Assembly (NCBI GenBank): GCA_965644495.1
Contig: CBFFSA010000055.1
Coordinates: 1-52,280 of the forward strand
Source: Perkinsela sp. CCAP 1560/9
Lineage: Eukaryota; Protista; Euglenozoa: Kinetoplastea
Direction: 5' to 3'
DNA: 52,280 nt
The translations under genes and the position numbers were made by a program. Below the pieces are notes generated by a model that was not told the origin of the DNA, did no database searches, and saw nothing but the letters and a program-made list of their open reading frames with translations. Shown here in pieces: positions 6,300 through 37,342 of this stretch (the stretch's first letter is position 1; every line of letters starts with the position of its first letter).

Positions 6300-6903
6300 T
6301 ACGACATTTGTTTCGTCATATTCGCCTCCTATCCCTACTGGTACACAACACCTGTTGCCTGGGAGCCTAACATATGAATTTCGTGGAACCAAGCGCGTCA
6401 AGATATGTACAACTGGAAAAGAGCGTAACATCACAACTTGTTGGATGTGGTGTCGTTCTTCGAAAAATTGTGATGACACCTGGTCGCACCTGATGAACCC
6501 ACCTCACCTGATTTGGAGCACGCAATCAGAAGTTGGACCCATTGCACAAGAAACCAAGCGAGCCAGCGTGAAATATAAATGTACCAGCACTACGTCGAAA
6601 TCTGGTTGGACGACTGGCGTAACATTTTTACAGTGGGCCAAATTTGAGTTTTGCGACCGATCAAAGTACCCACCTTACAAGACTTTGTTTGTCCTAGATC
6701 TTTACGCAGCACATCGCACTAAGGAACTTCTTCTATACTTGAAGGAAATGCATATCGATATTTTGTTTATTCCTGGCGGATGTACCCCATTAGTACAACT
6801 TATGGACACAAGCGTTAACAAAACTTTTAAGAAAAACTATATGGACAAGTGCAGCACGCAAGTGCAGCACAAAAACTATATGGCGTGCAGCACGCAGCTT
6901 TAA
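6300..6903 (+). pseudogene. pogo-like DDE_1 transposase fragment
   Basis: KSGW, LFVLDLYAAH and FIPGGCTPLVQLMD motifs; truncated at both ends. Confidence 0.8.
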
Positions 6904-35250: not shown

Positions 35251-35888
35251 TATACAGCATGTATAACAGGATACCTACTACATACATGTATTATACCCCC
35301 CCCCCAATTATTTGCAAAACAAATCGGTACTCTTTTTGGTTGTAAGTTGTAACTTACAATTGTAACGTACAAGTCACTTACTCCAGGGTGTGAATACATT
35401 TCACACATCTACATAGTACGGTATGATGTACTATATCTAGTACGTACTAACTACCGTACTATCCGTACTAGGATAGTAAAGTCCCAAAAAAGCCCATCGA
35501 AACCTAGCCCCTAACCCCTAAATAGTAAACGTATTAAGTATAAGGTACGAACTCGAATGTTTTATATCGACATAACGGGCCATTGCTAACAATGACTTGA
35601 GTTCCACTAGCGGAGTAAAATATGTCTTTCGGCAAATCCATAACATTTAGCTTTCCTTGCAACATTTCATTACCACTTAGAAACGCAAACCTCAACGAGG
35701 CTGGAAGGGCAGAGAAGTCAACGTATCCTGAAAATTGGTTATCCTCAATGTTCAAAACTTCCAATAACGGAGGCAAATCGTAAAAATTGAAGGTTCCACG
35801 AAAGTTGTTCTCCTTTATTAATAGCGCCTCTAAAGTTTTAGGCAAAACGTCGAACGGAAAATCTCCAGAGAGCTTGTTGCGGAAAGCG

Positions 35889-36471
35889 AGTGTTTTATCA
35901 TGCACTTATAGTGCAGAGATTTGCTCACCATGTCCTTATCCCGCATACGACGGGTGGATCATGTGAGGTTTCGTCCTCGCCGGAGGTGTGCGGGTGCGGA
36001 GAGCTGGCGTCCCAGGTGCAGAGAGCTCGGTTGTCATGTGCAGGTGCAGAGAGCCGGATGCGTAATCCCCATATTACAGTTTCGGGGGCAATCCGGGTGC
36101 AGAGAGCTGCGACAGAGCCGAGATGCGGAGAGCTGGGCGACCGCCAGGTGCAGAGAGCCGATTCTCGTCGGCGGAGGACACGTCTAGTGGTCCTCAAGGG
36201 AGGCCACCGTGACGCATGGCCCTCTCGGAGAGGAAAAAGACAAGCCGAAAAAAAGCCGAGAGGGGGAAGCACACTCACTCCAGGGGAGTGAGTCGGGGAG
36301 GGGTGAAGTGGTGAAAGCGCGTCCCCTGCTTCAGCGACAAGAGGGACAGTTCCGACCTTAGTGCCGGCCGGCAACGGGCATGAAAATACAGTAAGGGTAT
36401 GCCCGTTGCCGGGGAAAGAAAGGATGAACTAAGGAAAAAGTACCAACAAGGTACAGAAACTGTATCTTTAT
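35889..36471. mobile_element. SL-terminated, highly structured non-coding insertion with no TSD, TIR or poly(A)
   Basis: Boundaries are defined by the paralog. It is GC-rich, has six GTGCRGAGAG-type motifs, and has an SL-like terminus. Confidence 0.8.
36440..36471 (-). ncRNA. Spliced-leader RNA-like segment (exon nt 12-39 plus donor GTAC)
   Basis: ATAAAGATACAGTTTCTGTACCTTGTTG|GTAC has an exact 16-mer, GATACAGTTTCTGTAC, of the trypanosomatid/bodonid SL exon, correctly spaced from TTG|GTA. Confidence 0.75.
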
Positions 36472-37342
36472 CGAAATGCTTTTAACTGAGAAGGAAGATA
36501 TCCGAGGTCTAATGAGCCGCAAAGAGTGTTATACGTCCACCTGATATCTGTCACAGTTCCATTCTTGTCACACTTAACTCCTTCCCACAGACATCCAGGA
36601 CACTCTGTCGTCCAGGATTTACGAGGGTTGTCTATGCCTCTGACAAGCCGCGCTAAATCATACTCGATGGGAAGATCGGTGCCGCGTATCTTAGACCCGG
36701 GATAGAGTGCACTCTGTTTTGTACCGTTTTCCTTCAAATCCTGGTCAGCACAGTGCAAAAGACCCATTACATGAGACGTCATGTGTAAAAGCTTTTATTT
36801 GCAAGAGAGAGAGTATGCGATACTCCGTAACCTTTGAAAGCAAGCTAATATTCGTAATATTTTAATATCCTCGGAATTAAACGTAAACGTAAGGGAATAT
36901 CCGCCATGGGTTCGGCAAATACTTTCACAAATCATATGTCAATGAATCAACGCATAATTTTTTATAGAACAGTGCTATAAATTTCTGTCAAAAAACACGT
37001 GGAACGCGAAGCTAAAAGTAAGCACATAAAAAATCACTTTAAAATTGGCTCAACGGGGAAAACTACACGAAAAAGCCCAAACCACACGTAAATAATTTCT
37101 CATACGGAAATAAAAATATCAACGCGTTGGGTCAGTGAAAAAAATCAATTTCATAATACTTTCGCAACTACCAAAACTAGAATCCATCACTTGAAATGTA
37201 TCTTTTTGACTGCTACGAACCTGTTCCATGTCCATTCAAAATCATTTTCTCCTCTCACCACACCATAATCTTCCATGAAAAACCTAAACGAACCTATAAA
37301 ATCGGTCAAAAAAAACGTGCCACGCCATAAAAACCCCCGCCC

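Follow-up and report, generated by a model that had tools for sequence, protein, structure and literature searches.

A predicted rod-shaped RNA domain with six repeated motifs in the central body of a spliced-leader-headed retroposon of Perkinsela

The window, that is, the whole stretch of 52,280 nt that was analysed (Perkinsela sp. CCAP 1560/9, contig CBFFSA010000055.1), carries on its minus strand a gene split by a copy of a retroposon that we call SINE-A. An earlier note on this DNA had singled out 207 nt in the middle of this copy (35973-36179). They make up the central body, specific to its family, of a non-coding SINE-like (or internally deleted LINE-like) retroposon of a kinetoplastid-type protist; they are part of a mobile element, and are neither a host RNA gene, nor a ribozyme, nor a new class of RNA. 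The features of the locus, all on the minus strand, are the following:

35534..35888, minus strand: downstream half of the interrupted gene, with repeats of the NKLSG, NNFRG and NQFSG type
35889..36471, minus strand: complete copy (583 nt) of the non-coding retroposon 'SINE-A', from its young subfamily T1
35889..35972, minus strand: 3' tail, of an architecture common to families B and C
35897..35920, minus strand: terminal hairpin AUC-UC-UGCACU / AGUGCA-U-GAU, whose 5' half, UCUCUGCAC, is the body motif
35973..36179, minus strand: family-specific body, predicted to form a rod-shaped RNA domain, absent from families B and C
36180..36443, minus strand: head, ~265 nt, with a 12-bp hairpin and an internal CCTTAG, the putative splice acceptor
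36444..36471, minus strand: DNA-encoded 3'-terminal 28 nt of the spliced leader, starting ATAAAGATACAG and ending CCTTGTTG
36472..36782, minus strand: upstream half of the split gene, whose translation looks LRR-like to the eye

The ~580-nt minus-strand RNA of the element would be expected to have GAUAAAAC as its 3' end.

Contigs of four public runs (X1-X4) represent the empty site: in them position 35888 is joined straight to 36472, with 0 bases shared or lost at the joint, so the insert is exactly 583 bp long and has no target-site duplication. R2-type insertion need not duplicate its target, and the missing duplication is compatible with it. Across the empty-site joint the two gene halves form one continuous reading frame; to judge by the translations the gene looks LRR-like, and a Pfam search with the two halves gave no match. 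Over 35566-35888 and 36472-36810, the empty-site contigs X1-X4 differ from the window by ~10% in the left flank and by ~1% in the right, and their source may be a paralogous gene or a recombinant allele instead of this same locus.

The element is repeated throughout the genome. Searched with a 401-nt query taken around the flagged stretch, the 21-Mb assembly gave at least 40 copies (88-99% identity). In total the dispersed SINE-A family has at least 60 copies there, on many contigs; 49 SINE-A tails were counted in the genome. A covariance model of the body (R1) found 74 places, mostly copies of the family, and a few weak matches (C1:2634099 and C7:523313, for instance). Metagenome contigs scanned with a pattern of two motifs yielded 119 loci, all of them attributable to chance, as BLAST found none that resembled the element. 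By comparison of the copies the repeat unit spans about 35889 to 36470, its 3' end being constant within 4 nt and its leader end variably truncated. The open reading frames at 35925-36374 (minus strand) and 35890-36291 (plus strand) were rejected as coding: since the spacings between motifs are not multiples of 3, and subfamilies differ by 2-nt and 28-nt indels that are out of frame, we regard the element as non-coding. It is not a classical SINE either, because its head, which derives from neither tRNA, 7SL RNA nor 5S RNA, is not of the Pol III type; a tRNA scan of the window found none.

The 5' end of SINE-A is a relic of the spliced leader. Its 28 nt, from a leader of the euglenozoan type, show no difference from the 3' part of the exon in the SL RNA genes, two of which lie 297 bp apart on the minus strand of L023 (G000:C1:660316-662635), with another in L032. 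In these genes the full leader has 38 nt, starts AACTTTAACG, ends CCTTGTTG and is followed by GTATGAGAAGC; the element and the SL RNA gene have in common the leader exon plus GTA and nothing further. The 279 leader-plus-GTA sites are mostly retroposon heads, distinct from the true SL RNA genes. We also considered the element as an SL RNA gene or a derivative of SL RNA and rejected this reading, as GTATGAGAAGC does not follow the exon and many copies join the leader at other positions. The length of leader kept ranges across copies from 19 to 38 nt, with a mode of 28. In three copies (L003, L016, L017), and in those members of subfamily T3 that were examined, the leader is joined directly after the internal CCTTAG, a pyrimidine tract plus AG that, from its sequence, is a putative trans-splice acceptor. 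L007, L005, L009 and L021 carry older, incomplete leader copies stacked immediately 5' of the present leader, and in L007 the leader is joined after an ACAG inside the older leader; such relics would indicate repeated rounds of trans-splicing and retroposition. From the position of the leader, the polarity of truncation, the variable leader length, the use of the acceptor and the stacked relics, we infer a minus-strand RNA intermediate that would be trans-spliced and then reverse-transcribed. All runs were searched as contigs, and the sole run guessed to be RNA holds just the empty site, so transcription is read from the DNA pattern. A full-text literature search found no description of spliced-leader-headed retroposons in kinetoplastids and no match to the leader sequence itself.

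SINE-A belongs to a set of at least three families of ~580-600 nt that have in common the first ~300 nt (leader plus head) and the architecture of a ~85-nt tail. The SINE-A head shows 75-83% identity with those of sister families B and C; the middles of A, B and C are completely different, and B and C, which lack the flagged body, diverge from SINE-A exactly there. Every tail closes with AUC-UC-[stem]-loop-[stem]-U-GAU, with stems that vary yet stay complementary (GCAC/GUGC, GCGC/GCGC, GCAGG/CCUGU, AGUGAU/AUCACU). The same flanks, AUCUCU ... AUGAU, enclose other complementary stems in SINE B, in SINE C and at three LINE 3' ends (L096, L098, L099). The SINE-A tail thus has an architecture common to three LINE 3' ends, and its exact GCAC/GUGC stem is found in none of the LINEs examined. 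Nor did the LINEs examined give any match to the motif array or the body, and the likeness of the SINE-A head to a LINE 5' region covers ~60 nt only. Three candidate 'LINE tails' that matched the SINE-A tail proved to be truncated SINE copies or a chimera. The L096 LINE has the leader at its start and contains a 1358-aa frame in which Pfam identifies RVT_1 and zf-RVT and no AP endonuclease; among proteins of solved structure its best relatives are those of R2 (E 2e-34), with an alignment that extends from the RT as far as the C-terminus, so that by its sequence it appears R2-like. For the L098 and L099 LINEs the Pfam scan, the single analysis applied to them, gave RVT_1 only.

Several further observations concern these elements. 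LINE 3' ends lie head-to-tail against a SINE leader, directly in L098 (4283-4400) and via (TG)n in L099 (4024-4200), an arrangement that R2-type template jumping, or repeated use of one target, would give. On the minus strand of L101 (G000:C1:2019900-2026400; ~6330-6450), a 35-nt family-A tail directly follows an inverted LINE 5' end, of which an inverted leader is part, so that the whole is an unusual chimera. On the minus strand of L097 (G000:C25:16500-24300), the leader is followed by a ~2094-aa frame with AP endonuclease, RT and RNase H, and the same element has an 825-aa frame with WKTW repeats; as this element too is leader-headed, leader heads are not limited to the R2-like lineage. The body of family B (L041:380-560) is likewise an internal duplication, of a ~78-nt unit; both units form a hairpin, and comparison of the two shows one compensatory change. 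It may be general in these families that the body is duplicated and structured.

The body itself is built from a motif, GTGCRGAGAG on the plus strand and GCUCUCYGCACC in the RNA sense, and from the spacers between its copies. In the order in which the RNA would be read, its parts are:

36169..36179, minus strand: closing stem P1, 5' strand, pairing with 35973-35982
36147..36157, minus strand: motif m1 (CUCUCUGCACC), facing m6 in the first internal loop
36136..36147, minus strand: long-range helix P2, 5' strand (CUGGCG-G-UC-G-CC), pairing with 36004-36013
36122..36132, minus strand: motif m2, facing m5, with the private change at 36123
36107..36122, minus strand: helices P3, P3b and P3c, 5' strands (CUCGG, UGUC, GCAG), from the minimum-energy folds
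36096..36106, minus strand: motif m3, facing m4
36054..36096, minus strand: apical hairpin (CCGGAU/AUCCGG plus CCCC/GGGG), from the minimum-energy fold
36043..36053, minus strand: motif m4, facing m3
36026..36043, minus strand: helices P3c, P3b and P3, 3' strands, pairing with 36107-36122
36015..36025, minus strand: motif m5, facing m2
36004..36013, minus strand: long-range helix P2, 3' strand, from RNAalifold and covariation counts
35993..36003, minus strand: motif m6, facing m1
35973..35982, minus strand: closing stem P1, 3' strand, pairing with 36169-36179

The earlier note had listed six motifs on the plus strand; five are exact (35994, 36016, 36044, 36097 and 36148) and the copy at 36123 carries one mismatch. 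The A at this position is private to the window copy, the other copies and all the public contigs having G, so the family consensus has six perfect motifs. That the motif is over-represented, as had been noticed, is borne out by the counts: at one mismatch or fewer there are 11 in the window against 2.6 expected, a number that 0 of 100 shuffles reach. The view that this is no simple tandem repeat also holds, since TRF finds no array at 35973-36179 even at score 30, and the spacers differ and pair with each other. The motif number varies at separate loci, where variants with 7, 5 or 3 motifs occur, and 28-nt duplications or deletions between motifs recur (L086; L024, L091 and L092); given the 5-, 7- and 3-motif variants, neither six copies nor an intact CUCGG/CCGAG helix can be strictly needed. 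Within GCUCUCYGCACC lies UCUCUGCAC, the sequence that makes up the conserved 5' flank and the 5' arm of the terminal hairpin of SINE-A itself; this hairpin includes a seventh, partial motif at 35911-35920. A likeness between the motif and AGCTCTCTGG in the target gene was judged coincidental, because the flanks of other copies are without AGCTCTCTGG.

The fold of the body was modelled from an alignment of 52 copies in the RNA sense. In these models it takes the form of a rod, which runs from P1 through the loop m1/m6, P2, the loop m2/m5, P3 and the loop m3/m4 to the apical hairpin, and in which each of three large symmetric internal loops would hold two copies of GCUCUCYGCACC. P1 exists in four compensatory versions (GUCCUC/GAGGAC, CCCUCGCUG/CAGCGAGGG, CCUUCGC/GCGAAGG and GUCUUC/GAAGAC, the fourth found in the 3-motif variant) and pairs in all four subfamily consensuses, although the sequence changes by 22-31% between T2 and T3 and from either of these to T1 or T1b; in the closing-stem segments of T1 and T1b, which have the same stem, the difference is only 3.8%. 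For P2, the RNAalifold model joins the sequence that follows m1 to the one that precedes m6, in place of two local hairpins: 97.8% of the alignment cells are paired, and two compensatory pairs, one changing from G-C to A-U (7 distinct rows) and the other from C-G to G-C (6), speak for the long-range helix, whereas the same changes under the local-hairpin model leave 8 broken cells and no compensatory pair. These counts have as their basis few independent events, in four to five subfamilies, and since the inner helices are invariant among subfamilies covariation is silent on them. The apical loop (36071-36083, minus strand) contains GAAACUGUA, which is perfectly complementary over 9 nt to UACAGUUUC of the leader that heads the element, and AACUGU stretches in the head are conserved in all families, one of them pairing with the leader in the minimum-energy fold, which suggests a possible contact between the 5' end and the body.

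These results redraw much of the structure first proposed from the letters. The closing stem and the nested helices named there recur in the minimum-energy folds of both strands; the local CTGG/CCAG pairing does not, as these stretches pair with each other across the domain. The four-way junction gives way to the rod, which is 6-10 kcal/mol better in all four subfamily consensuses (4/4) and has more changes on both sides of a pair (3 pairs in 25 cells versus 1 pair in 10 cells). G-U pairs had been taken to favour the plus strand, and with it an RNA ending in anti-SL sequence. In fact, wobbles are commoner in the minus sense (37 versus 15 in the closing stem, 8 versus 0 in the long-range helix), the other directional features are also minus, and the RNA of the minus-strand element would start with the spliced leader. 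Stability above dinucleotide shuffles is a property of the whole element only (581-583 nt; z -4.8 on the minus and -3.4 on the plus strand): the 207 nt alone, a self-contained domain within the fold of the whole, are not exceptional on either strand (z -0.31 on plus, -1.12 on minus). Covariation among the genomic copies, by contrast, yielded the compensatory changes in the closing stem and the long-range helix. A ribozyme-like motif finds no counterpart in Rfam 15, where the whole window has 0 matches at the gathering score and 35700-36700 has chance-level matches only at E<=10. The idea of a selected RNA architecture survives through the compensatory changes in two helices and the slow rate described below, and its reading as a host RNA is given up.

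Rates were compared between the consensuses of four subfamilies (T1, T1b, T2, T3), each with at least 3 copies in the body alignment; consensuses were used because changes after insertion are neutral. Between them the interior, from m1 to m6 (155 nt), diverges by 1.3-3.2%, the head by 10-15%, the tail by 8-16% and the closing-stem segments by 4-31%. Thus, among the subfamily master copies the interior has evolved ~5-fold more slowly than head and tail, a contrast found in each of the six comparisons between subfamilies (Fisher p 8e-4 to 5e-6). Moreover, all eight fixed differences in the interior (8/8) spare the structure: they comprise the 2 compensatory pairs in P2, 1 bulged base and 3 C/U exchanges at the Y of the motif. 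Purifying selection on the master copies would give this pattern. The flanks of the interior differ sharply between subfamilies, and exchange of bodies between lineages by template switching could partly add to the uniformity of the interior. We hold it very probable that the flagged stretch is the body of a minus-strand retroposon, structured and selected; and since it is the body of a retroposon with at least 60 copies, selection would act on retrotransposition and not on a host RNA gene.

Among other explanations, the one that survives best, which we nonetheless consider unlikely, is that the body is a neutral by-product: a filler grown by slippage or unequal recombination between short direct repeats, seeded perhaps by a partial copy of the 3' hairpin, with pairing as a side effect of palindromic spacers (CUGG...CCAG) and uniformity due to the recent spread or exchange of one cassette. 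Several observations fit such an origin, as the two halves of the body are 72% alike in direct orientation, 28-nt duplications and deletions recur and a 3-motif form exists, the body alone is no stabler than shuffles, and the interior flanks diverge by as much as 31% from one subfamily to another, which is what one would expect of the borders of a cassette. However, a filler of this kind would not be expected to diverge ~5-fold less than head and tail in 6/6 comparisons, to accept only structure-sparing fixed changes, 4 of the 8 making up two Watson-Crick compensatory pairs, or to rebuild its closing stem in four sequence versions.

The conserved display of unpaired tracts could instead serve a protein of the host, an alternative to which we give still less credence. 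Polypyrimidine-tract binders prefer UCUU or CUCUCU in loops and act in kinetoplastid trans-splicing. A protein of this kind, and not a LINE protein, would bind the six unpaired CUCUCU tracts and so affect the stability, export or trans-splicing of the retroposon RNA, or it would be soaked up by it. The motifs are indeed predicted to be unpaired, and they are pyrimidine-rich, regularly displayed and conserved, in line with the loop preference of such binders; yet conservation reaches past the pyrimidines to GCAC, the 5' arm of the SINE-A 3' hairpin, and sister families B and C have spread equally well without such tracts in their bodies. Least credible of all, and in our view very improbable, is a host RNA gene on the plus strand, with a four-way junction and purine-rich linkers forming a new ribozyme-like motif or scaffold: its helices can be drawn on either strand and the whole plus strand folds better than its shuffles, but leader, splice-acceptor use and truncation polarity all point to the minus strand, as do the wobble pairs, covariation and energy favour the rod, Rfam has no matching family or ribozyme, and the sequence is a multicopy mobile element and no gene.

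The explanation that we prefer, and believe to be probably right, is that of a selected cis-acting rod domain of a minus-strand retroposon, with a multivalent bait as its likeliest mechanism. The element would be made as a minus-strand RNA and given the spliced leader by trans-splicing, and the leader-headed RNA would be copied back into DNA, here into the LRR-like gene without target duplication. The RNA of the body would be a rod that displays the motifs unpaired in internal loops, a cis-acting domain selected for the efficiency of retrotransposition; its six unpaired half-sites would raise the local concentration of the LINE protein on the passenger RNA, and reverse transcription would start from the true hairpin at the 3' end. 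That the body helps the element to get copied is probable. A multivalent protein-binding scaffold, a candidate function that the earlier note had also raised, stays our best guess, as the domain is structured, with unpaired motifs and signs of selection; a bait is the likeliest form of it because the motif is the 5' half of the element's own 3' hairpin, whose architecture closes three LINE 3' ends. We can propose only tentatively that the LINE protein is the specific ligand of the body motifs, and it is a rather speculative step beyond this that, through a dedicated 'bait' domain, the passenger wins the LINE protein in competition with the RNA of the R2-like LINE itself. If true, this would give a non-autonomous element a new means, readable from the sequence, of parasitising its partner. 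Because the design of the body is readable and the constraint on it measurable, a passenger that recruits the LINE enzyme through multivalent decoy sites is a directly testable idea. The new points are the rod topology, the contrast in rate between the interior and the rest, and the structure-sparing nature of the fixed changes.

The bodies of SINE-like elements are usually regarded as filler. In the CORE-, V- and Deu-SINEs, the central domains are more constant than head and tail and are presumed to serve retrotransposition; to our knowledge they are still without a known function. As in these elements, the central body of SINE-A is far more constant than head and tail across subfamilies. Unlike them, it is conserved within one family of one genome, and it has a covarying fold and a six-fold motif that copies its own 3' signal. 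This conserved, covarying, six-motif body is a variation on the theme of the conserved SINE core.

SINE-A also resembles the non-autonomous R2 derivatives ('SIDEs') and the tail-sharing LINE/SINE pairs: (i) it is short, non-coding, dispersed and 5' truncated, and has no poly(A); (ii) the architecture of its 3' hairpin is common to three LINE 3' ends, one of which (L096) is R2-related; and (iii) like the SIDEs, it is inserted into one gene family, although its targets are LRR-like genes and not rDNA. It departs from the SIDEs in that its 5' end is a trans-spliced leader, and not a ribozyme-processed or Pol III start, and in that its middle is not LINE-derived and forms a separate, conserved six-motif domain.

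With regard to the leader, DinoSL relics have been described in dinoflagellates, where leaders tag the retrogenes of ordinary mRNAs (PMC6050394, PMC5585692). Like these DinoSL retrocopies, SINE-A has a DNA-encoded 5' leader relic and stacked relics (PMC6050394, PMC5585692); in contrast to them, it forms a mobile family of its own, which is non-coding, belongs to a euglenozoan and has a 3' signal of the LINE type. With the trypanosomatid RIME, NARTc and SIDER, SINE-A shares the condition of a kinetoplastid non-autonomous retroposon whose families have a common 5' head, in their case Pr77, which is also present in their LINEs (PMC8190864, PMC3383444). The Pr77 elements produce unspliced transcripts from an internal promoter, with a poly(A) end, whereas the head of SINE-A begins with the leader, poly(A) is missing, and the partner is R2-like and not of the ingi/L1Tc type (PMC8190864, PMC3383444). 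With the body of SINE-A, the spliced-leader-headed retroposons of the Perkinsela genome gain an explicit RNA domain.
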